From Ylistrum balloti (taxonomy: Eukaryota): a stretch of DNA of 64,000 nucleotides. This document shows positions 9,328 to 39,939 of the stretch, piece by piece. Position numbers and translations under genes: made by a program. Each line of letters begins with the position of its first letter. Positions within the stretch are counted from its first letter, which is position 1. The stretch is from NCBI RefSeq assembly GCF_031769215.1, contig NW_026782492.1, forward strand, positions 248,001 through 312,000, written 5' to 3'. The notes beneath the pieces were generated by a model. The model had not been told where the DNA came from and did not search any database. It saw only the letters and a list, made by a program, of their open reading frames with translations.

Positions 9328-10670
9328 ATGAATCTTCAAAATAAAAGCGATACTGACTCTCCCCTGATAATTAATGATGATCTGAAAATACATCCTCCAG
9401 ATAAAGCTGAGTCTGTCGATGATTACTTCACATCTATTTCAACGACAGACAAGAATGCTGATGATTTACCACTTGATTATCCCACACCAATTATTAACTT
9501 CTCTTCTATCGACATAACTGGACAGGACATTATTGACCAACTTCAACTTCTAAATACTAACAAACCTGCAGGCCCTGATGCCATCCCTCCCAAATTCATA
9601 AAAGGAGTTTCTCAATCCCTTGTTAAACCTCTCTCTATAATATTTAATAAATTTATCTCTGCAGGTGTACTTCCTACCTCCTGGAAAAATGCCTATGTAA
9701 CACCTGTATATAAAGGGAAAGGAGGAAAAAGTGACCCCTCCAACTATAGGCCAATCTCTGTTACTCCAATCTTCAGTAAAATCCTTGAGAAAATTGTTTT
9801 CAAATATTTGTACAACTATCTTTCAAGATACAATATTATCAGGTTTCTTACCAAAAGATTCTGCTGTTAATCAACATTTAATTATATATGATGAAATTAT
9901 TAAACATTTGGATACAGGTAAAGAAGCAAGAATGATATTTTGTGATATTAGCAAAGCGTTTGATAGAGTTTGGAATGATGGATTAATTTACAAAAATATG
10001 GTATTAGTAATAACATGTTAAAGTGGTTTTCATCTTATTTATCTGACAGGAAACAGAGAGTGGTCCTAGATGGGTACAGGTCCAACTGGAAAACATTACA
10101 GGTTGGGGTCCCATAATGTTCAGTTCTTGGTCCTTATCTGTTCTTGCTATATATTAATGATATTGGTGATGATTTACTATCTAATGTGAAATTATTTGCT
10201 GATGACAAATCTTTATATGGCCTAATTGAGGGTGACAGGCAAGATGCTGCTGATATACTAAATGATGATCTCTGAAAAATTTCTAAATGGGCCAATAGGT
10301 GGGGTACTATTTTTAATCCGGATAAGACTGAATCCCTACTTTTTTCTAGGCAAATAGATTCTGAAATGCTGCATCCAAATCTGTATTTTGATAACTCAGT
10401 TATTAAAAATGTTACCTGTCATAAGCACCTGGGTCTAATTTTTAACAGTCATGCTAATTGGTCCAACCACATAAGCTTTATGTATGAGAAAGCTTATTAA
10501 CGAATACATATTCATAGAATGTTAAAGTACAAAATTGACAGAAAGTCACTTGAATTAATATGTATTACATTTATTCGTCCTATTTTAGAATATGATGATA
10601 TTGTTTGGTCTAACTGCACAGAAAGGGAATGCAACATCTTAGAATCAGTTCAATTAGCAATACACATTAT
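9328..10670 (+). mobile_element. 5'- and 3'-truncated CR1/L2-type LINE reverse transcriptase fragment, inactivated
   Basis: Seen: NKPAGPDAIPPKFIK, PTSWKNAYVTPVYKG, DPSNYRPISVTPIFSKILEKIV, IFCDISKAFDRVW, SVLGPYLFLLYINDI, KLFADD, HKHLGL, with frameshifts and stops. Established: CR1/L2-group RT motifs. Confidence 0.92.
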
Positions 10671-11213: not shown

Positions 11214-11344
11214 GCTAATCAGCAAACTGTTAAGGTATTGCTTCACCATTATTCATGTAGTTCTACTAATATAGCCAAGAGAGTATTGTAGCCTTTAGAT
11301 GTATTTTAAAGTGTGTAATTGTGTCAGTGATTTTCACCTGAACA

Positions 11345-11989
11345 GATGACCTTGACCCTAGTATCTACCATCATGGTATCTGGATAGATGATCTTGACCC
11401 TAGCATATACCATCATGGTATCTGGAAAGATGACTTTGGTCCTAGTATCTACCATCATGGTATCTGGAAAGATGACCTTGACCCTAGTATCTACCATCAT
11501 AGTATCTGGAAAGATGACCTTGACCTTAGTATCTACCATCATGGTATCTGGAAAGATGACCTTGACCCTAGTATCTACCATCATAGTATCTGGAAAGATG
11601 ACCTTGACCTTAGTATCTACCATCATGGTATCTGGAAAGATGACTTTGACCCTAGTATCTACCATCATGGTGTCTGGAAAGATGACTTTGACCTTAGTAT
11701 CTACCATCATGGTATCTGGAAAGATGACCTTGACCCTAGTATCTACCATCATGGTATCTGGAAAGATGACTTTGACCCTAGTATCTACCATCATGGTATC
11801 TGGAAAGATGACTTTGACCTTAGTATCTACCATCATGGTATCTGGAAAGATGACCTTGACCCTAGTATCTACCATCATGGTATCTGGAAAGATGACTTTG
11901 GCCCTAGTATCTACCATCATGATATCTGGAAAGATGACCTTCACTCTAGTGTCTACCATCATGGTATCTGGAAAGATGACCTTGACCCT
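11345..11989. repeat. 42-bp minisatellite, ~15 copies, highly homogeneous
   Basis: Seen: gatgaccttgaccctagtatctaccatcatggtatctggaaa, which contains the TACCAT-C-ATGGTA hairpin. It produces the repetitive ORFs 11324..12025(-) and 11388..11993(+). Confidence 0.97.
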
Positions 11990-13114
11990 GTAGAGATAAC
12001 ATTGAATTTCACCACAAAAGATCACTGTATTTTCTGGATTTTAGCCCCGAACATTTTTGCTTGTAGGAGGGGTGTATGGCTTGAATACCGATGTGGCTTA
12101 CTAGTAGATCAAATAAAAAATTAATTAAAAAAAAAAGATAAAAGATCTGTGTTTTTATACATCATACATAGTATAGACATTAATATTCAGTCACTCTGAA
12201 AAACATTTTTACCAAACTTTGTAGCATATTAGTAATGTGTTTTTACAGTACCTGCCCACTATATTATTGTGACTGAAACAGATGACTTGTAATCACATTC
12301 AGGATGACTTGGGAATTGCAAAAAAAACAACATTTCTGTGGATTTAATTAATTATGCTTTTTAATATGTATCCCAATAATACCTTGACTCTGGTGGTTAC
12401 ATCGCAGCAGTTCCAAGAAGGCAAGCAAACGTTTATAATAGACCCTGGGATCTATTGGTCATGGGAAGATATGTCAATTTCTTGAAAGGTCACCATGTTT
12501 TCCCCATATGAATGGCTTTGTTGTAACTTACCTGAATATACATTTTTGGATTGTAGGAACTTTTTTCAGGTGCCTTTATCAATGTTTGATATTACAGAGA
12601 CTGGTGGAGATATTGTTTAAAATAGTTACTTATGTACGTAACGTCCGGCCCTTTATCTGTACATGGACAATCTTTCAAGGCCCGCAACAAAACATTATTT
12701 CATGTAGTTTACATAATCAGAATAATTTTTGAAAATATATCAATAAAATAAACAATTTGATGCATAAAGCATTTGTAAACTGTATAACCGAGTAAATGTT
12801 TCACTGACGATCTTGATAAATTACCCTTTGTTGTCTGTTATATCAACAAACTTGGATCAACATAGCGGTCACTGTATCGTAAGAAAAGGGTGCAGCTTAT
12901 ATTCTGAGATGGCTAATATGTGGGTAAAACAAAAAAGTGGTTAAAAATGCCTCTGCAGCTTATATACTGGAGTGACTTAAAACCCCAAAACGTGGTATGT
13001 TAAATTTGAAGTTTACCTGGACAGATATCCTTGTCTCTGAGTTTTACCTCTGAAAATGATAACGTTGAACACTGCTTTTATGTCATAAGTTCATATTTGT
13101 TTTGTGTGTTTTAG

Positions 13115-23399: not shown

Positions 23400-23475
23400 T
23401 AGTAACCTTGCTGAACAACACACAGAAGGCCCATCATACGCCATCTCAAGCAATTAAGGTGAAGTGTCTTGCAAT
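23400..23475. mobile_element. Short SINE-core fragment
   Basis: Seen: gcaattaaggtgaagtgtcttgc matches gcaattaggttgaagtgtcttgctcaaggacacaac at ~39995-40030. Inference: conserved central domain of an aquatic-animal SINE family. Confidence 0.45.
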
Positions 23476-23715
23476 AGATCTAGATATAATTTTTCAATTC
23501 TTGAATATGTAACGAAAGCAACTCAAAAAATCATATCCATCTCTTACTAGATTGATGATTTTTTTTATTTCTTTTTTACTTTGAATCTGTAACTATCAAC
23601 TAAACTTCAAAGATGAGTCAGTATTGATTTCATATGCAATGGAAATGGAAATGAACAGAAATCTGACAATGTTCAGTTTTATGATTTTACTGTATTTCTA
23701 CATGTTAAACACTCA

Positions 23716-24458
23716 TTATGTAGGGGTATTAACTGTGTTATTACTAGTAGAAAAGTTAAGAGGTTGGTCTCTATTATTACTATCTGTGGGTTTGTCACTT
23801 ATTTCACATTTCTGTTGAAACTCTACTTTGATTGACTTTTGAAGTATGTCGGACTGCGTAGTCGTTTCTGTCATAGTACTATCAGGTACATGACTTTGTC
23901 CTCGAGAAGAAGAATAACTCTGACCATTTAAATGACTTTGACCTTGTAAATGAGCTGGTAAAAGTCGATTTACATACGGCTTGCTCTTAACATGAGCAGC
24001 CATTGGTAAAGACTGACCACGGAATGAGTCCGAGAGGTCAGAGGATGAAAGACTAGCGGAATTTTGACCTTGTAAACTTGGAGGTAGATGTGACATACTT
24101 TGTAATAAATGAGTTGAGAGATTAAACGGCGTTGCGTGACTATGTGGAAAGCTTGCCGCTTGTAAACTAGCATCAGTTCTACTGGTAGATGAGGTAACTG
24201 TATCCATAGCACCAGCAGTCTTTCTGGAGAAATTTGATTGGCTGAGCATTTTCTTTGCTGGGAATCCTCGTGCACGCTGATTCTGAAACCAGATGGTGAT
24301 TCGGTCGACAGGGGCCCCAAGTTTCTCAGCAAGAAGTGCTCGAGTTGACAGATTTGGATTTGGGTCCTCCTCAAAGAACCGACACAGTACCATCAACTGA
24401 AAAACTGTGAACTTTTCTCTACGACCAAATCCATCCTTAGGGCCGGTCTTCTTATATT
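23716..24458 (-). CDS. CUT-class homeobox gene, exon 4: homeodomain plus S/Q/H-rich C-terminus, with stop codon
   Basis: Seen: ttttttcttcag| acceptor (phase 1). Reads EYKKTGPKDGFGRREKFTVFQLMVLCRFFEEDPNPNLSTRALLAEKLGAPVDRITIWFQNQRAR, a 60-aa non-TALE homeodomain with R5, F8, L16, F20, W48, F49, Q50, N51, R53. Open to TAA at 23716. Confidence 0.92.
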
Positions 24459-25168
24459 CTGAAGAAAAAACAATGTATTTGTATTATTGATGCAGTTATC
24501 ATTGATCCTACAGCCGAGTGACTGTTCAGTCAATTCTAATGGTGACTCTACCGTTAGCAAGAACTTTAAGTTTGCTAAAGCTGGATTTCATCTCGCACAA
24601 CAAACGGTTTGTTAAAATGATATAATCGACCTAATAAGAACATTCTTTCACAAATACTTCTTGGAATACAGAAACATTGCATGCAAATTCCCAAGACTTT
24701 CTGACATTAAAACCCATTTTCATTTCACATACTAGACATTATCTTCAAAAATACTCAGGCTATAGTTATAGAGATGTAGACCTAGATTTTCATGGCAGAC
24801 CTGATACATGTGACAAAGTGTTGCTGATAAAACTGAAGAAGCTTACTCTTCTGGAACCCCTGATGTTTTTCTCTTTTAATTTTCAAAGCTATTTGTGTTC
24901 ATCTATCAACCGTTAATATTTTGCCTCAATTCAATGGTTTCAAGTTTGACTTCTGTTGACATGTTTAAATTGTCTTGTTCTTTTATCAAATACTAGGTAT
25001 TCATATTCATCATTCAAACCCATAATAAGATGATGAATTAACTTATTGAAAGAGATCCATGAAGTAACTATTTCTTCATTTCCACAATCCTCCTGAAATT
25101 TCCTTTCTTTTCTTATTGATCTACTTAGTAAAATTTTATTCTTCTATTCAACAACTTTCATGGCTTAC

Positions 25169-25427
25169 CTTTTGATTTCTGTAGTAGAGACATGGTGTGT
25201 TTCTGTTCGTCTGTACTGTCTAGCCACCGTCGCATACGTACATATGGAACACGACCACGGGGACTGAGTTCGTGCCACTGTTTATTACGACCTTTGTCCA
25301 ACAGAAAACTGAGGTTGCCTTGACTGGTCTTCTCCATAATATTCTTAGCTGCAAACCGTTGTGAAATTCCAAATTTCTCCAACACATCTTTGAATTCTTT
25401 AACTGTACTTGGTATATCAACTTCACT
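25169..25427 (-). CDS. CUT-class homeobox gene, exon 3: CUT domain
   Basis: Seen: tgtttctag| acceptor and G|gtaagc donor; 259 nt (phase 0 to 1, matching exon 4). Reads SEVDIPSTVKEFKDVLEKFGISQRFAAKNIMEKTSQGNLSFLLDKGRNKQWHELSPRGRVPYVRMRRWLDSTDEQKHTMSLLQKSK. Established: the CUT signature is ISQ..F...SQG.LS.LL...PW..L...GR..Y/F.RM..WL. Confidence 0.92.
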
Positions 25428-25693
25428 CTAGAAACAGATATGAATTTTTTTCCTTGTAAAATGATTTGACAGTAATTGATATGTAAATAGATTCAATGGC
25501 TAACACAATTCAGTAATTTTCAGTGATTACGTTCTGTACAAGCAATGCAATAAAATTCAAACTACATTTAATAAGTTTAAATCAGACATAAACTTGTGAC
25601 AATGATCAAAGTTGTGATAATTTTCACATTGACACCTTCAGAGGTTAATACATAGCATACCTTACAATACAGTGATGTATCTCTTGGGACCCT

Positions 25694-25871
25694 AGATGAT
25701 GTGTTGAACTGATAACCTTCGACCCATGATAAAACTGACTCCAGATGATGTGTTAAACTGATAACCTTTGACCCCTGATAAACTGACCCCCCCCCCCCCC
25801 CAAAAAAAATGATGTGTTGAACTGATAACCTTTGACCCCTGATAAACTGACCCCAGATGATGTGTTGAACT
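25694..25871. repeat. 48-bp tandem repeat (~3.5 copies) spanning the exon-2 splice donor, with a C15/A8 homopolymer insert
   Basis: Seen: agatgatgtgttgaactgataacctttgacccctgataaactgacccc. The last partial copy is exonic. Confidence 0.9.
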
Positions 25872-25971
25872 GGTCCTGTAGTTGTTGGTAGATGTTATGA
25901 AACTGACTGAGCGGCTGTCCATCACTGTTTTCCGTTTCCTCCAAACCGCTGTCCGGAGGCTGAGGGTCCTC
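25852..25971 (-). CDS. CUT-class homeobox gene, exon 2
   Basis: Seen: tttcatttgttttatatag| acceptor and GGG|gtcagt donor; 120 nt, phase 0-0. Reads EDPQPPDSGLEETENSDGQPLSQFHNIYQQLQDQFNTSSG and joins exon 3 in frame. Confidence 0.8.
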
Positions 25972-27409
25972 CTATATAAAACAAATGAAAAGAGAAATGT
26001 TTATAAACTACCTTAGGGTATAGTTTTTTGTATGAAAACTTTTAGATAAAATATAATCTGTTGTGAGGAAGGTAGGTAAATAACATTTTGAAACATGTAC
26101 ATATATATGTTCTTGATGTTATTTATTTTATGAACCTAGCACAGTTACTATATCTTTGTATCTTGTAAAATAATCCCAGAAGTGAAGACAAACTTTGACC
26201 TCAAAGAAGGCAGCAGGCTGATTACAAGACAATCCATGAAATAATATTTGTTAACATTTTAATAAATTGCAATAGACATGAGTGGACTTATTAGCAGGTA
26301 TGGGGTAATTACTGGATGAATATGGTATGTACGGTAGTGATCTCTAACACGTCATCCACAAGGCTGAAACTTTAATTTTAGTAGTATTGATTAAAATAAC
26401 AACACTTTGTCTCCTAACAAACAGCTAGCTGTTCTACATCTCTCTTTACACTCCAATTTGTTTTTCTCCCTCTTACTCTCTCTCTCTAAAACATCTGGTT
26501 TTTAATATAAGTTAAAGGTTTTTTTGGGTTTTTTGCCCTACTAACAACACTTGTACAAATTTGTATATACATGTATTCAACCTGTGCCACTATTATTTAT
26601 TTATGATAGATCTTGCAAAAAGGAAAGTAATTTATACTAATACATGCACCCTGAATGATATCATAACATCTTTCCAACAAATTTCGGGATTACTAATGCA
26701 TGGTACAGCCTAGTACAGATTCTGGATCTGTACATTACAGGGCTTTATTAGGAAAATACATTACTCACCAACTTACCAACCCTCTACCTAATCAATACAT
26801 ACATATGTAAGTCTATATTACGAGCATCATTTGTATATACTACTATAAGGTGGAACAGGTGTTTGTTATGTTACCAGTCTACATTTCCAGCAGCTCTTAC
26901 AGTAAACAGCATGCTAGTTTCCTGTACTGAAATACTGCAGAAAAACGAAACCTATCAAGTACCATTCACCAAATTAGGTGAAATTAATAGGCAGAAATTT
27001 AATGCTACCATATTAGATCTTAAACTCAAGCCAGATAGGCCATAATTATATAATAAAGCTGATATAGTAGAACCCAAAACCACAAGTCCCAAGTATAACT
27101 GTGACAATAAATAAATGTCATTTTACACAATTTCTAAATATGTTTATCCTTCCAGGTTAATTGATATTTGTACAAATTTTGTACCATTATACATTGCAAT
27201 ATAGCAAGGAAACCAAGAAATGAAGTGTTATTTATCAGCCTAACAAAACAAAATCTTTTTTCCTCAAGGGGATAGGGGGTGGGATTCTTGTTCTGAACCC
27301 AAATAAATGTTTTCACTCCTAGCAACTTCCATCCATATTTAGGGAATCTTACTGGAAATACAGGTAAGATAAATGATATTACATTACCATTGATGAATTT
27401 ATGTTTCAG

Positions 27410-27503
27410 GGTGTGGTGCAAAGGTCAATGTCAAAGTCACCATTTATAGTATATTTGTATTGTGGTAGGTCAGGGGCATTCAAGTCTTACAGACATCTCT
27501 AGT
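27410..27503. mobile_element. Terminal remnant of a dispersed non-autonomous repeat (second copy near 63290-63400)
   Basis: Seen: aggtca..gtcaa.gtca...gggcattcaagtcttacagacatctctagtt here, and gggcattcatgtcttacagacattttatagtt at ~63370-63400. Confidence 0.55.
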
Positions 27504-28415
27504 TACATCTCAAAACGTATATCTAAAAATGATTTTCTTCTGTTTTTTTTTAAATTCTATGATTTTAACACCACCTTGATTTTGCATTAAATAAATCTAC
27601 TTATGGTATACTGATTTTAATGTATGTATGAATTTGTGGGTTAAGCCTTTAAACACATGAAATCAATGCAAACAAATCCTACACAAAAATTAATGGTTTC
27701 ACAAAATGTCACAAGCGTAATATACCCTAGAGCATTTTTCATTGGCTGCAAAAGTCAGAAATTGATTGTGATGTAATAATATGGACAATGATGTTTCCTT
27801 TACAAACTACAGTAACTTAACTCCTCCCAAGGAGGAACCACAGTTTTGGTAAAACACCTTATAATTAAGACCCTTCCATCCATGGGGCCTCAGATGATGA
27901 TTTTTTAAACTTCAATACATTAGGCCCCTGTTGCCCCAACCCCGTTGCCCCTCCCCAACAGGGACAGGTGGTTCACTATTTGTGTTCCTGATCACCTTCA
28001 GCCATGGAAGGTTTCTACCTTGTTTACAGCCAGCTTTTGATCAGGTACGTTGTAGCATGGTTGTCATATCTATCTAACGAAACACAAGCCCATGCCTGGT
28101 AATATGCCCATCCATATCTATTGATGTTGAGCAAAAAATACAAGCAAATGCTATTCTGTTGTCCTGCAATAAGCCTGGAAACCAGCACTTGACATAGAAA
28201 TAACCAGACTATCTGTGTTCACCCTATCATAGTTAGGTTACAAGTACAGGTACTACATGTGGTCGACCTCATCAAGACCAGTCACCTGTATGTGTCAGCT
28301 GTCAATCAAATGATCACCTTTAATCTCTATGTTAATACATACCACCTGTATACCAGTATGTAATAAAGCTAGTGTCAGCAGCTTCATAATTTACTTTTTA
28401 TAAATAAAAAAAAAG

Positions 28416-29080
28416 AAACAAGAGGCCCAAGGGGCCTTTATTGTCACCTGGCTAATTTTGCTATTCAGACATTTAATAAAGAATTCAAAATATGACAAAC
28501 AATTTCTAATATAATTTCCCATAAGGTCTTGCCCATGTGGTCAAACAGATCAGAATCACTATCCATAGAAATTGCTTCAGAACGAACTTGGACAATATCC
28601 TTGTATGGCAGAGGTACTTTTAAGAACTTATCTTTCTCCAACTGAGCCCACCAATCCTTCCCTAGCACTTAGTCCCTTTCACCCAACAATGCTTCAGACT
28701 CAATTTCATCAAAATCCAATCATTCCTACAGAAGGAGTAGGATTTTTAAAGAATTAGCTACATCAACCATATTGGACCTTATCCCACAGGCAACAGGATG
28801 CTGAGACCTACCATTTACACAAAATGGCTCCCCTTCACCCAACAATGCTTCAGACTAAATTTGGACAAAATCCATGAATTCCTACAGGAGGAGAAGGGTT
28901 TTAAAGCATATTCTCTATTATCCATATTGGGTCCTGTCCCTCAGGTTCCAGGGGGCCAAGACCTACCATTTATACCAAACATTCCTTTCACCTAACAATG
29001 TTTCAGATCAAAAGTTGCAGATGGATGACAGATGTCGCAGCATGCCATAAATCGGTCCTTCTGGACAGGTGAGCTAAAAA
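28416..29080 (+). mobile_element. Non-autonomous Helentron/HINE-like element in intron 1 of the homeobox gene, with ~155-bp internal repeats
   Basis: Seen: starts aaacaagaggcccaaggggcc (GGCCC-aag-GGGCC hairpin). Subterminal inverted repeat TCACCTG (28444-28450) / CAGGTGA (29066-29072), then gctaaaaa. The internal cacc(c/t)aacaatg motif occurs at 28680, 28836 and 28989. The class call is inference from known bivalve elements. Confidence 0.65.
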
Positions 29081-30527
29081 TTTCACAAAAATATTTAATT
29101 TGCACAATAATGAATGCTGTTTGTTTATTTAATTTTCATTAAGTTTATCCCTTCTGAACAACCACTTTGGTAGTTTAAAGTCAGTGTCTCCTAAGCAGCC
29201 AGGGACTGCTTCACTGCATGAACATCAACCATATCTATTTTCTAGAATATTTCAGTAAAGGGTCTTGCCTAAAGTTAAAAACACATAGTGCACTTGGTCA
29301 GTGATTTCAGAATTTTTCGAGAAACACAAAAAAAAAAAAAAAAAATTGGAAAATTGTATAAGGAAACCAAAAGCCTTAAGTCTTCATCTGGGGTTAGCAT
29401 AGTGTGATGTTTATCTACAATGCTAAGGTGACAGCTATAATAATACATAGGATTACTAGTAGAAACAGTGCATGTAATATGTAATATTATGAGAGGATGT
29501 CACATGTAAATGCACTTGACAATACATGTACAATTTGAATTGGTGTTTAAATGTAATCATATTCTACCATCATCTCTGGTCAGCTGGTTTACCAGGGTAA
29601 CATTAAATATGTTATAATGCACCCCAGCTGGGTTCACTCACAAAAATATGACCAATTGTATTCAGTATAGAGCAGTAAATTAAAGTGCATGTAGGCCAAG
29701 GAACCGTTTTGCACAATAATTGTTAAACTAATGTCATGTAATTACATCTCAGTCTGAGCTGAAATAAAACAAATACTGGTTTGAATTAAATAAAATATCA
29801 TCTGAACTGTTGATGCGATAAAAAGTAGTTTAAGGTTTTTGAATACATTTTTCAATATGTCTACTTTCATTATCAAATTGAGAACAAATAAATAGTTTGA
29901 ATCTATTTGGTCAAATGTATGTTACATACAAAACAGCTGTTCAGAAATATCTGTTGAAATCCTCTGAATAGTTATGAACCTTAGCTTGCTAACATGAAAA
30001 TTCTTTTCAAATACAACCCTAAATTTTAATTTCATAACCCTCAGTTTGTATATAGGTTGTTGTTATGGTATACAAGCATTTAAAAATTACATATCTACAG
30101 TTCGACTACCAGCAGAATACAAGAAAACTTCTAGACAGCTAGATATACATATGTATATATATACAGTTTTGTATATGTGTACTGTGTGAACTGAAATTCA
30201 TCATATCAACACACAACATTAAAGTTGTCGCATTTATTTCTGTCATTATTTATAATTATTTCATTCATTTATTCATTCATTATACTAATTAAGATTAACT
30301 TAAAAATACAGCTCACTTTGAAACACGGATGTGTATACGTCTGATACGATAAAGAAAGTGGATGTTTCACATGCTTATGACCAAGTCTTCTAGCTACCAG
30401 CTGATCAGCCCAGTACAAGGTAATAATATTTGGGGCTCAAGAGAGGGGTATTTCGGCATGATAATTGGTCTAAAGCCAAGTTAAACGTAAAGGTCACTCT
30501 CTATAAATATTTCCGATATATACTTAC

Positions 30528-30617
30528 CTCCATCGCTTGTTCCTTCATTTGAGAAACTTGCTGAACCCAAGCAGCAGTTCTTTCCAGGGTATCAAGGTTT
30601 ATTTGAGTATTTTCCAT
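30528..30617 (-). CDS. CUT-class homeobox gene, exon 1 (first coding exon, ATG)
   Basis: Seen: ATG at 30617 with an in-frame TAA 7 codons upstream. Reads MENTQINLDTLERTAAWVQQVSQMKEQAME, then |gtaagt; 90 nt, phase 0 matches exon 2. The four exons give ~403 aa. Confidence 0.75.
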
Positions 30618-30899
30618 TCTGCTGTCGTGGTTGTTTTAGATACCCTGTCGGAGGCCCCTCTTTGTACCTACTGACACGGAATATTCACTCCACTTTGATG
30701 TTGCCGCTCCGTCCGTATAGGTATATATTGTTACTTATACAGGCAATATATGTTTATCCAGTGTATGGTACGTAGATCCTAATATCCACAAATATCAAAA
30801 CACCATGGTGAAACTTGAATTATGTCGTATCGTCAGCCAAACGTAATGTTTTCCCATGAACTTCTTGGTCGCATGACAAGTAAACACCACACACAATTT

Positions 30900-31140
30900 G
30901 TTTTCTGTGTCTCCCACAAGGTGGGGCCGTATTCCGGTGGTGAGCGTCCCTGTTCGGTGATACTGGCCCCGAGGGAATGGCGCTCGTCAGCCAATCAGAT
31001 TCAGTCAATCGATCATACTCAATCACAATCAATCACCAATCAAGCGGCCTCGCGAGAGCGCGCGCCCCACTCATACAACGCCATAGCGTGTCGTGACAGG
31101 CTAGGCTAGTGTGTAGGGCACAGCAGTTTGATTGATCGGG
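30900..31140. promoter_or_regulatory. CpG-rich promoter region upstream of the homeobox gene: CCAAT/CAATC cluster and CGCG element
   Basis: Seen: local CpG enrichment, six CAATC within 30992-31041 (two are CCAAT), and cctcgcgagagcgcgcg at ~31048-31064. Established: CCAAT is the NF-Y box, and TCTCGCGAGA-like motifs are promoter elements. Function here is inference. Confidence 0.6.
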
Positions 31141-36748: not shown

Positions 36749-39463
36749 TTAATTGACTTCCGGTGTCTTGCTCCTGTGCCGGATATGATTCCCTGTTCCG
36801 TGACGTCGCCTGAACTTTCGGTGATCGCTTAATAACGGAACACGACGGGGAAGAAGGCATGCAAACGGTTTATTTGCATCGTCAAATCCGGCTTCGATTC
36901 GACCGTTTGTGACAATGAATCCACAGTGACTAGCGTTTAGCAGCTGTGGACCGCGACAAACCTTCACACTCCAATTTATTCCGATTCTGACCTCCAGGAA
37001 GTTTGATTTCAGTTGCAAAGACATATTATTGGGAAACATCCTAATGAATTTCGGTCCAGAATTGATACTAACTTCACCTCTTTCGTTCTGAACTATTTTA
37101 ACACCATTGATTCTAACAACAGACGATCCGTTTGTTCCGTGCTCAATATTAGCTTCCTCTGCTATTGCCCTTGCACGTTGTGTGACGATATCACTGCTCC
37201 TCTGTGAAGCGAACAGGAAGTCAACTGATAGGTCATTGCGCAGGTCAGAAAATTCGGGTTCTGTTTCTTCTATATCCTCGTAGTCAAATTTATAGCACTT
37301 GAAGTTGTTAGCGAATACAATAGCCTCCGCTTTCATCTTGACCTTCCTTTGCAGGAATACTTCAACTTCTACGGCTTCAAGGTCCTGTGTTACCCTCGCC
37401 GCTGGATGGAACACGTAGCTTTCTGTTCCTTGGCTGCTAATCAGTGCCACTAGTTTTTTCTTGTGGTTGACAGCACGGAGCACTTGATCTGTTGTCATTT
37501 CCACTGAGAAGTCATGACGCAACAGCACCGTAATGAGTCCAGCCTCGGACAAGTAAATTGCTGGATACCGGAAGTCTATCTGCTGATTTCCGTTCGAGGT
37601 GTTAGGGAATTGCAAGTGCTGATTGCTCGGGCCCGTTGTTTGATCTGTTTGTTGAAAAGATGACATATCATTTGGGTTCGCATTCGGTAACAAAATGTTT
37701 CTGGGATAAACTGGGTATGCAGGATGCCCTAGTCCATGTTGACAAAAATATGGTCTTTGCTGAAGTAGGTAGCCATTGTTTGTGCAGTGGTGTACAGGAA
37801 ACATATAAGTCTCTCCATAGAAATGATTTGAATACGATGGATCGGTATTAAAGGCTGCAAGATGAGGTGGTCCATCATAGGTTAGGACCCCTGAATGAGA
37901 TTCTGATGTTTGGTACGAATTATCAGCGTTGCTATACGCTGTATACTGGCCGTTACAATATTGCATGGGGACAAATGGTTCACACTCCGGATTAAGGGAA
38001 GAATTTGGAAACGACGACAGACTTTCATTTGTGCTTGTCGGTGTGGTGTCGATAGTTCCTTGTATATCCAGTATACCGGTATTCGAATTCATAATCGTTT
38101 CTACTGACTTTGGAACTTCGGTCTTTTCTATATCTGCGTCGACAGCTTGTTGTGTTTCAACTACGTCGGCCGACGTTTGGGGATCGTACCATGTTTCTGT
38201 GATTTCACTGGGGTTTTCACAAGGTGAGAACGATATATCAGCGTCTCCGTGTTGTCCTTTATAAGGTGGCTCGTAACAAGTACCTTGTATTTCATTTGTG
38301 TTCGCTAAGTCACCATCACTTTGCCGCGGTGTTCTATACAACGTCCTGTCATTATCCACAATGTTGAACTGGTTTATAAACCCATTCGTTGATTGACAAT
38401 GACCTTCTGGTGTACGCTCCAAACTTTTTGTCTGGCCTTCGTGAAAATCTTTCGAAATTGGGGGATATTGAGATGCATCTGCAAAGTTGTCAGATATCGG
38501 ATACTCAAATGCAATGTTAGAGCTTTGATCGGGGGTCGTGTAGCTGTTTTCATAGTCTTGTTGTGGATAGGGGACGTCGTTTGTACCCGACTTCCCGTAT
38601 GATCCTTCATTGAACATTTCGGAAGCGGTATAAATAACTCTGTCGTGGTCACAATTTGTCGCAGTGGCACATATGACGCTTGGTCCACCGTCAAACGGGC
38701 TAAACACCGCACAAGAATCGTAATATTCTATCTCCCCGTCAAGATCTTCTAGCTCGGGAAGTCCTGGGTTGTCGGTAGGAATGTTCAGACGCGAAGTCAC
38801 GGTGGTCGCCTCTGGTTGCTTTTGGATTTGGTTCGGTTGAATTCCCGCGTTATTAGTTAAAGAAACTGAACTGATCATGGGCCGTTCATCAGAAGAAACC
38901 ATTTCCTCGGATTGAACCATTTCCAATATTTTGTCGAGAGTTTCACGAACTGCATTGTCAAACTCAACTTCTTCTTTAGTTTCAATGGCCAGTGAAAATC
39001 CGGAGACTTGGCGGTTTTCTGGACTGGTTTCCTCTTCTGCATCAACAAAAACATCCTTTCCTTCGTCATCTATCGTCGTATCTTCTGATGTTGATGTCAC
39101 CGTATCGACATACTTGTCAGTATCGTCGCTGCTCTCGTTTGAATAATCATCGCATTTAGGTAAAGTCTGTGCTGAAGTGACCGCCTGACACGGTACGATG
39201 ATGCAAATACCATCTGTATCTGTATCGCTATCTTCCTCAATGTCATCGTCAGTATTGTCTTTGATACCGACGACCATATCATTTATAATTTCAGATGCGA
39301 TGCTGTAAGCTACCAAGTTAGTCTCATATGCGGTTGCCATCGTAAGGGTGCCGACTTCTGGAAAACTGTTTCCGCTGTCGCTAACCATCATGTTGACGTT
39401 GACTACGCACAGTATCTGTGACGTTTTTAACACAACTATTTCAGGAAAATGTAACGTCGACAT
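36749..39463 (-). CDS. Single-exon ~900-aa protein: acidic disordered N-terminus, PAM2-like motif, C-terminal domain resembling the protostome Fest (wurstfest)-like family
   Basis: Seen: 2.7-kb uninterrupted ORF, GC- and CpG-richer than its flanks. First ATG at 39463, alternative MM at 39391. C-terminal VEMTTDQVLRAVN...VFHPAARVTQ...FSDLRNDLSVDFLF...INGVKIVQNERGEVSI...GFIVTNGRIEAGFD aligns by eye with my recollection of the insect/nematode family. The coding call is strong; the family name is unverified. Confidence 0.85.
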   Translation of the reverse strand: MSTLHFPEIVVLKTSQILCVVNVNMMVSDSGNSFPEVGTLTMATAYETNLVAYSIASEIINDMVVGIKDNTDDDIEEDSDTDTDGICIIVPCQAVTSAQTLPKCDDYSNESSDDTDKYVDTVTSTSEDTTIDDEGKDVFVDAEEETSPENRQVSGFSLAIETKEEVEFDNAVRETLDKILEMVQSEEMVSSDERPMISSVSLTNNAGIQPNQIQKQPEATTVTSRLNIPTDNPGLPELEDLDGEIEYYDSCAVFSPFDGGPSVICATATNCDHDRVIYTASEMFNEGSYGKSGTNDVPYPQQDYENSYTTPDQSSNIAFEYPISDNFADASQYPPISKDFHEGQTKSLERTPEGHCQSTNGFINQFNIVDNDRTLYRTPRQSDGDLANTNEIQGTCYEPPYKGQHGDADISFSPCENPSEITETWYDPQTSADVVETQQAVDADIEKTEVPKSVETIMNSNTGILDIQGTIDTTPTSTNESLSSFPNSSLNPECEPFVPMQYCNGQYTAYSNADNSYQTSESHSGVLTYDGPPHLAAFNTDPSYSNHFYGETYMFPVHHCTNNGYLLQQRPYFCQHGLGHPAYPVYPRNILLPNANPNDMSSFQQTDQTTGPSNQHLQFPNTSNGNQQIDFRYPAIYLSEAGLITVLLRHDFSVEMTTDQVLRAVNHKKKLVALISSQGTESYVFHPAARVTQDLEAVEVEVFLQRKVKMKAEAIVFANNFKCYKFDYEDIEETEPEFSDLRNDLSVDFLFASQRSSDIVTQRARAIAEEANIEHGTNGSSVVRINGVKIVQNERGEVSINSGPKFIRMFPNNMSLQLKSNFLEVRIGINWSVKVCRGPQLLNASHCGFIVTNGRIEAGFDDANKPFACLLPRRVPLLSDHRKFRRRHGTGNHIRHRSKTPEVN

Positions 39464-39939
39464 TTGTGACGTCACAGACCATTGTTCAAAGATCCAGATA
39501 AGGTCATAGTTGATTAGAAAGGGTGGAGGGTTAAAGAATAATGCTTAAGAAATCAAAAGAGAGAACATTGATTAAATTACATGTATATCCAACTAGATAG
39601 AAAGGTTACGTAGCTATGAATCATCCGTATTTCTTTATTTACTTGTTCTTTAGTACTTAAAAATCAAAATCAGTAGTTCTGATATTTAATCATTGGTACT
39701 GATGTGATAAGTCTCCCATGTTTTCTGTTATTAAATCTAACGTTGCACACTTTCGTCTATCAAGAAAAGTCGCGAAAGCGAAACTTTCTTGTTATTTCCT
39801 TCTCGGGAAGATAATGTGTTTTGGGGTCGAATTTTCATGTTTTGAGAATCAATGGACTTTTTTATTTACATATGATGTTTAACAATATAATTACTGGTTT
39901 TATCTCCCCGAGAACATGTAAGAGTCATTTTGAGAAGGG

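Follow-up and report, generated by a model that had tools for sequence, protein, structure and literature searches.

A single-CUT homeobox gene of the scallop Ylistrum balloti and its bivalve family

What kind of gene joins a single CUT domain to a W48/Q50 homeodomain, and from what did it arise? We addressed this question in the scallop Ylistrum balloti, in a 64,000-nucleotide stretch of contig NW_026782492.1 (positions 248,001 to 312,000, assembly GCF_031769215.1), hereafter the window, whose minus strand carries such a gene. The locus is very probably a functional gene encoding a CUT and homeodomain transcription factor of 403 amino acids (aa), the orthologue of oyster Cgi_CUT1 in a bivalve-only family. 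The structure and domains of the gene, its orthology and distribution, and the selective constraint on it are demonstrated. Homeobox genes confined to one lineage are candidates for shaping development specific to that clade.

Gene structure and selective constraint

Translation of the exons gives a minus-strand gene of four exons and 403 aa with no internal stop. All three introns are GT-AG with compatible splice phases, and no run of N occurs in 23400-30900. The features of the locus, in window coordinates and with exon borders marked by a slash, are as follows.

30617..30528, minus strand: exon 1, start ATG, 30 codons, donor GAG/GTAAGT
25971..25852, minus strand: exon 2, 40 codons, acceptor tatatAG/, donor GGG/GTCAGT
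25427..25169, minus strand: exon 3 (CUT exon), 86 codons plus base 1 of codon 157, acceptor tttctAG/, donor AAG/GTAAGC, phase 1
25194..25424, minus strand: CUT domain proper, aa 72-148
24458..23716, minus strand: exon 4, bases 2-3 of codon 157, 246 codons and TAA, acceptor ttcttcAG/
24253..24432, minus strand: homeodomain, aa 166-225
23749..23763, minus strand: C-terminal PLNFS motif, aa 389-393
23564..23569, minus strand: candidate polyadenylation signal AATAAA, a pattern match about 150 nucleotides past the stop codon

Exon 1 encodes the N-terminal motif (A/T)LERTAAWVQQV, which is kept in the pteriomorph orthologues of our alignment, and the exon is also present in the Argopecten genome (L001). 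Exon 2 encodes an acidic linker of poor conservation, and a Pfam scan of exons 1 and 2 recovered no family. Pfam assigns exon 3 to CUT (58 bits against a cut-off of 24.4) and recognizes in exon 4 a Homeodomain (50.5 bits against 22.9), which is followed by a Ser/Gln-rich tail and TAA. The arrangement that defines the CUT class, a CUT domain N-terminal to a homeodomain in one protein, is found here, with Pfam scores of 55-58 bits for CUT and 50 bits for Homeodomain and an agreeing fold.

The exons were searched singly. A word search with exon 4 found the NCBI protein P0001, 'homeobox protein cut-like 2 [Ylistrum balloti]', which is 100% identical over 403 aa to the four exons joined and was then used as the full-length protein; the gene is already annotated by NCBI, so it is not new. 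An earlier note on this DNA had proposed four exons with canonical, phase-compatible junctions and about 403 aa without stops. The coordinates, splice sites, translation and identity to P0001 bear this out, and the strings that it quoted (SQGNLSFLL, WHELSPRGRVPYVRM..WL and WFQNQRAR) are all found in the protein.

Against the related bivalve Argopecten, a comparison of the kind that the earlier note had recommended, the ratio of nonsynonymous to synonymous substitution rates (dN/dS), taken exon by exon, is lowest in the CUT exon (0.003) and the homeodomain (0.014) and higher in exons 1 and 2 (0.14) and the tail (0.22), with synonymous sites close to saturation. Judged by these ratios, purifying selection acts strongly on both DNA-binding domains. 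The Argopecten genome holds the same four exons in the same phases, with a gene span of 8.4 kb. Moreover, an Argopecten Logan contig of 1779 nucleotides (run SRR19746222) carries an uninterrupted 404-aa open reading frame (ORF) and is therefore a spliced transcript that joins the CUT exon to the homeobox exon. The transcript proposed as a check in the earlier note is found in one of the two scallops: in Argopecten it joins all four exons, but in Ylistrum no RNA run holds the locus. A second Ylistrum individual, represented by a DNA run, has three synonymous and three conservative changes (S155T, I361V and R386G) and no disruption.

Beside the exon 2 donor, intron 2 contains at 25690-25850 a few tandem copies of a unit of about 45 bp (…gatgatgtgttgaactgataacctttgacccctgataaactgacccc…). 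A C12A8 run accompanies them at 25788-25807, and it is in this region that the contigs of the second individual break.

The bivalve family of Cgi_CUT1

Exon 4 is 85% identical in Mizuhopecten and 72% identical in Argopecten. From the CUT domain to the homeodomain, identity to the scallop protein ranges from 96% to 54% across Argopecten, Pinctada, Tegillarca, Mytilus, Saccostrea, Solemya, Mercenaria and Mactra, and an orthologue is also present in Mya. Since a claim of lineage restriction depends on not finding the gene elsewhere, an exhaustive search was run with a CUT-to-homeodomain profile against 1.84 billion representative proteins. This search added an orthologue from the unionid Sinanodonta, so that family members are found in every major bivalve lineage, namely protobranch (Solemya), pteriomorph, unionid and heterodont. 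All matches above 200 bits with one CUT domain and a homeodomain are bivalve, and among the 1.84 billion proteins no family member was found outside bivalves. The scores are separated by a gap, with the family at 200 bits or more, Mytilus paralogues at 115 and CUX modules, in which the repeat CR3 precedes the homeodomain, at 38-64. The lower matches are canonical CUX proteins of gastropods (Gigantopelta, Biomphalaria), a cephalopod (Argonauta), annelids (Dimorphilus, Owenia), a rotifer, echinoderms, Limulus, Trichinella and amphioxus. Mammalian DUX arrays match by the homeodomain only, and the fragmentary matches are all of bivalve-type sequence. In a set from hydrothermal-vent metagenomes, probably of Bathymodiolus, the exons for CUT and homeodomain are arranged in the same way.

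Across 12 lineages, 59 positions of the 160-residue region are invariant, including SQGNLSFL, RGRxPY, VLCR and WFQNQRARGFPA. The earlier note had proposed a lineage-specific, divergent CUT family; the exhaustive search confines it to bivalves, and it forms a clade of its own outside the CUX repeats. The family predates the last common ancestor of living bivalves. Its retention in all bivalve lineages, with DNA-binding domains that hardly vary, makes an essential function in bivalves probable.

Two further observations concern individual members. On one 533-kb contig of Mytilus coruscus lie two tandem, fast-evolving family paralogues (P0054 and P0175), whose homeodomain has N50 (IRTWFNNQRARNF) and reads WFNNQRARNF and whose CUT helix is degenerate (CSQSTISELY). 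Many of the oyster Logan transcripts P0020-P0029 keep the intron between the CUT and homeobox exons as an in-frame insert of about 97 residues starting with GT. The intron-retaining P0024 represents 139 member sequences and the spliced P0018 represents 101, and these read-through transcripts could reflect frequent intron retention.

Paps et al. (2015; PMC5322547) placed oyster Cgi_CUT1 (CGI_10006727) and Cgi_CUT2 in 'CUT Clade I', noted a CUT domain in Cgi_CUT1 only, and marked the clade as lacking monophyletic support. Allowing for optical character recognition noise in the supplement of that paper, the Cgi_CUT1 homeodomain corresponds to that of the oyster members P0015, P0018 and P0008; over the homeodomain segment, these share 76% identity with the scallop protein. 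The scallop gene has the features of the Cgi_CUT1 group, a homeodomain …LMVLCRFFEED.NP…ITIWFQNQRARGF with a CUT domain upstream. In the oyster, the homeodomain (…FQLMVLCRFFEEDQNPSLNTRMLLAEKLLVSLERITIWFQNQRARGF) likewise has the CUT domain N-terminal to it; the scallop protein differs in its length (403 aa versus about 600) and in its PLNFS motif, which the oysters lack. On these similarities, the scallop gene is the orthologue of oyster Cgi_CUT1.

The other homeodomains of 'CUT Clade I' (Lottia, Capitella, Pinctada 'Prop' and Echinococcus) are PRD-looking, quite different and without a CUT domain. Because they differ so strongly, the true orthology group, as judged from sequence, comprises bivalves only and is much narrower than 'CUT Clade I', a name mentioned in no further paper in the literature searched. 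To the 2015 entry, our analysis adds the limitation of the group to bivalves, the agreement of the CUT exon intron with the Cux CR3 intron, the PRD-like Q50 homeodomain and, in many members, a CtBP-type motif. The earlier note had treated the family as one that phylogenies would place outside existing groups; the CUT-domain tree does leave it outside the CUX repeats, but the oyster orthologue had already been named Cgi_CUT1, so the family is not new.

The members go by discordant database names that mislead ('cut-like 1', 'cut-like 2', 'One cut domain family member', 'DUXA-like'). In UniRef, 'One cut domain family member' is a generic label, and the NCBI label 'DUXA-like' of the Mya member is a similarity artefact. 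We also considered Lopx (Barton-Owen et al., 2018) as the identity of the gene and rejected it; the Lopx homeodomain (…RERFSYTRYQLELL…KIWFQNRRRKD) differs throughout, Lopx has no CUT domain, and it corresponds to oyster Hbx2, not CUT1 (Barton-Owen et al., 2018).

The two DNA-binding domains and their predicted activity

Pfam counts a single CUT domain in P0001, and the region of its recognition helix reads TSQGNLSFLLDKGRNKQW. In the alignment to human CUX2 and ONECUT CUT domains, there is a one-residue insertion before SQG and a two-residue insertion after LL. The 'LSPRGRVPY' spacing is CUX-type, whereas ONECUT is one residue shorter there. The small insertions flanking the helix and the CUX-like C-terminal spacing had both been noticed earlier, and the alignment agrees. 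In the helix SQGNLSF of the family, F is invariant where other CUT domains carry D/E, and N occupies the position of S/T. Among PDB chains, the family CUT profile scored 40.7, 36.4 and 31.0 bits against the human CUX2 repeats and 24 bits against ONECUT1/2, and no SATB CUT domain among these chains matched it at E<=1.

The structure was modelled with confidence, at a predicted local distance difference test (pLDDT) score of 83. As a whole, the model best matches the DNA-binding domains of HNF-6/ONECUT2; its first half matches CUX2 CUT domains and its second half matches DUX4 HD2. In this predicted model, the first half folds as a CUT domain.

The homeodomain has the standard length of 60 residues and carries R5, F8, L16, F20, W48, F49, Q50, N51, Q52, R53, A54 and R55, and WFQNQRARGFPA is invariant across the 12 bivalve lineages. 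The best PDB matches of the family homeodomain profile are DUX4, platypus sDUX (53.5 bits), HESX1, PHOX2B, Paired, PRRX, Aristaless, Gsc, Pax3, Otx2 and Alx4, and no CUT-class homeodomain occurs within the top 60. DUX4 HD2 structures are 46-47% identical to the scallop homeodomain model, with a root-mean-square deviation of 0.6-1.9 Å. Compared with PRD-like Q50 domains (DUX4 HD2, sDUX, Alx and HESX1), the family thus reaches its highest homeodomain similarity, with 42-47% identity and a shared IWFQN.RAR; however, PRD-like proteins have no CUT domain and have R52 rather than Q52, and there is no orthology signal. By BLASTP, identity to a gastropod Cux homeodomain is about 39%, with the shared stretch EDPxPxxST. 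Among the 1.84 billion proteins, homeodomain matches outside the family are scattered at 40-50 bits (mammalian DUX, and others that look fungal by eye), which indicates generic Q50 similarity and not a donor family.

SATB homeodomains carry Q50-N51-Q52-R53 in helix 3, as the scallop protein does, together with F48. The earlier note had described a W48/Q50 homeodomain with a SATB-like QNQR. These residues are indeed present, but kinship to SATB comes down to resemblance, as the best matches are PRD-like. The scallop protein has W48 and not F48, and Pfam finds in it no ULD/CUTL or COMPASS domain. Moreover, its homeodomain does not have the 10-residue insertion between helices 1 and 2 listed for oyster Cmp (PMC5322547). 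Judged by these differences, the resemblance to SATB is superficial.

Joined by a short linker, the CUT domain and the homeodomain would bind DNA together, as in ONECUT or in the CR3-homeodomain part of CUX. Under the general homeodomain code (I47, Q50, N51 and A54), the homeodomain, with Q50, I47 and A54, should prefer TAAT-type sites, unlike the M50 of ONECUT and the H50 of CUX. The altered CUT helix, with N for S/T, F for D/E and two insertions, may recognize a modified CUT half-site. We infer from these residues that DNA specificity is altered relative to known CUT proteins.

The C-terminal tail suggests a further activity. A motif of the form P[LVIM][DN][LF][STC] occurs in 18 of 26 family members, compared with a mean of 0.5 and a maximum of 3 in shuffled sequences. 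It takes the canonical form PLDLS in heterodonts and the form PLNFS or PINFS in scallops, Pinctada and Tegillarca. CtBP binding follows a PxDLS rule, and PLDLS/PLNFS may recruit the CtBP co-repressor. CtBP-mediated repression by family members is plausible.

Origin of the family and other features of the window

The family may have come from the end of Cux, from ONECUT, from a chimera or from an old lineage, and a Cux origin is favoured by the comparisons below. In Y. balloti and Argopecten, a phase-1 intron separates the CUT exon from the homeobox exon, interrupting a codon 18 residues past the L of 'WL'. Owenia (L009) and Branchiostoma (L010) have, in their Cux genes, an intron at exactly this WL+18 position and in this phase, separating CR3 from the homeobox. 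The CR2 exon of Owenia Cux ends elsewhere, at about WL+34, and Dimorphilus Cux no longer has an intron after CR3. This agreement links the junction of the two domains to an old CUT-class intron, which fits an origin from the CR3-homeodomain end of Cux. The earlier note had correctly placed an intron between the CUT domain and the homeodomain; it read this intron as part of an ONECUT architecture, but by position and phase the intron is at least equally the CUX one between CR3 and the homeodomain. As a separate observation, the Cux CR2-CR3-homeodomain exons of Owenia and Branchiostoma form a compact 2.4-kb block inside the span of a CASP gene model (CUX1_N + CASP_C); this CUX/CASP arrangement is known, and both assemblies annotate the two genes separately.

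Besides the intron, the family CUT domain scores best against CUX repeats, and the protein is collinear with the CR3-homeodomain part of CUX; by BLASTP, the scallop module is 33% identical over 163 columns to the CR3, linker and homeodomain of a gastropod Cux. The CR3-homeodomain-only isoform of CUX1 has an arrangement resembling the scallop protein. The differences from CUX are considerable. CUX has three CUT repeats and the scallop gene has one; nearly all CUX matches read WFHN (H50), whereas the family reads WFQN (Q50); and Pfam finds no CUX1_N/CASP region in P0001, although it is present at the Cux loci of Gigantopelta, Owenia and Branchiostoma. The CUT recognition helix of the family is altered, with two insertions, and the family forms a separate clade with a stem of 3.8 changes per site. 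In the favoured account, the family would stem from the duplication of a CUT-class gene, and what was copied was probably the CR3-homeodomain end of Cux; the copy would have diverged fast on the bivalve stem and would then have come under strong purifying selection.

We built a CUT-domain tree of 51 domains (the family, the Mytilus paralogue, CR1-3 of 12 CUX proteins and the three repeats of the ONECUT-like protein P0076) and a CUT and homeodomain tree of 24 modules (126 columns, linker removed). The trees left out human ONECUT and SATB sequences, their sole ONECUT-like row being the atypical P0076. In the first tree, the family and the Mytilus paralogue form a starred clade (97/93).

Several results weigh against our interpretation. 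The CUT-domain tree leaves the family outside all three CUX repeat groups, attached to none. The second tree weakly pairs it with Nematostella (82/76) against CUX and the ONECUT-like row, on long branches for which the tool flagged long-branch attraction. An approximately unbiased (AU) test of a clade joining the family to the ONECUT-like protein gave a p-AU of 0.215, so this clade stays allowed. Whole-module scores are equal for CUX, the ONECUT-like protein, human ONECUT2 and the Nematostella CUT-homeodomain protein, all at 42-64 bits (CUX CR3-homeodomain modules 38-64, P0076 47.6, Nematostella P0108 51.2 and human ONECUT2 51). The homeodomain profile scores 37-54 bits per single PRD-like domain versus 10-28 bits for CUX homeodomains. 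The shared WL+18 intron may be older than the CUX/ONECUT split and ancestral to the whole CUT class. Beyond the question of origin, the only Ylistrum run that holds the locus is DNA of another individual; 'bivalve-only' depends on genomes with predicted proteins, among which chitons, scaphopods and aplacophorans may be missing; and the PxDLS-like motif is absent from the mytilid, oyster, Solemya and Sinanodonta members among the 26 scanned, the scallop variant PLNFS being a candidate CtBP ligand.

Descent from ONECUT, as an ancestral one-CUT gene that passed on its architecture and its spacing between the two domains directly, is a possible though less probable origin. The architecture is identical, with one CUT domain and one homeodomain at the same spacing, and HNF-6 and ONECUT2 are the top structural matches for the whole module. 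Profile A2 aligns to human ONECUT2/HNF-6 in one stretch of equal length (2-150 to 3-151, 51 bits), the module score of P0076 is at the CUX level, and the AU test allows the corresponding clade. However, the CUT-only profile gives CUX repeats higher scores (31-41 bits) than ONECUT (24 bits), and ONECUT has a one-residue deletion in its 'L-SGRETF' region that the family does not have, so that the spacing at helix 4 differs. The family homeodomain has W48/Q50 instead of the F48/M50 of ONECUT (FFMN in the ONECUT rows of Paps et al. and in P0076), the intron agrees with that between CR3 and the homeodomain of Cux, and the sampling for this comparison is poor, with a single atypical ONECUT-like sequence.

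A chimera, in which exon shuffling on the bivalve stem joined a Cux-type CUT exon to a PRD-like homeobox exon, is unlikely. The two domains do lie on separate exons, the best PDB homeodomain matches are all PRD or PRD-like with no CUT-class homeodomain in the top 60, and identity to DUX4 HD2 reaches 46-47%. Furthermore, Paps et al. (2015; PMC5322547) grouped the Cgi_CUT1 homeodomain with PRD-looking lophotrochozoan domains. Yet the collinear alignment extends to the gastropod Cux homeodomain, at about 39% and with the shared EDPxPxxST. As in Cux, the homeobox exon opens just ahead of the homeodomain and continues as far as the stop codon, and the matches outside the family are scattered at 40-50 bits, as expected of generic Q50 similarity. 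In addition, Q52 in place of R52 is a trait of CUT-class and not of PRD-class homeodomains.

We regard as quite improbable a pre-bilaterian lineage with a CUT domain and a Q50 homeodomain that disappeared from most bilaterians but survived in bivalves and Nematostella (LOC5508153, P0108). In P0108, Pfam recognizes a CUT domain (55 bits), and WFQNKR homeodomains come after it. Like family members, the protein has QNPS at homeodomain positions 24-27 and, after helix 3, an 'LLxxGxxxxW' spacing longer by two residues, and it groups with the family in the CUT and homeodomain tree (82/76). But both branches are very long, with long-branch attraction flagged, the score of P0108 (51 bits) is not above those of CUX or ONECUT, and many independent losses would be needed (gastropods, cephalopods, annelids, ecdysozoans and deuterostomes). 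If this reading were true, the lineage would be marked by the longer spacing between helices 3 and 4 (LLxxGxxxxW) and a WFQN homeodomain, kept in all bivalves. P0108 itself contains a second homeodomain after the first, preceded by half a CUT domain.

That this is a degenerating or silent copy and the 403-aa model an artefact of annotation can hardly be right: the lack of the locus from Ylistrum RNA runs would fit it, but the frame is intact, every splice site is canonical, the domains have dN/dS values of 0.003-0.014, the second individual has no disruptive variant, and Argopecten has the same four-exon structure with a spliced transcript.

Elsewhere in the window, Pfam found no match for the ORFs neighbouring the CUT gene. 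An uninterrupted minus-strand ORF of 908 aa lies at 36749-39475; it is some 6 kb upstream of where the CUT gene starts and has no Pfam family. On the plus strand, ORFs at 1235-2707 and 9328-9870 resemble fragments of a reverse transcriptase of the long interspersed nuclear element (LINE) type by eye (…SNYRPISVTPIFSKILEKIV…), and Pfam gave no match to them at E<=0.01. Finally, about 16 tandem copies of a 42-bp unit (…VKVIFPDTMMVDTR…) occupy 11324-12025; they are open on both strands and are minisatellite-like rather than a gene.

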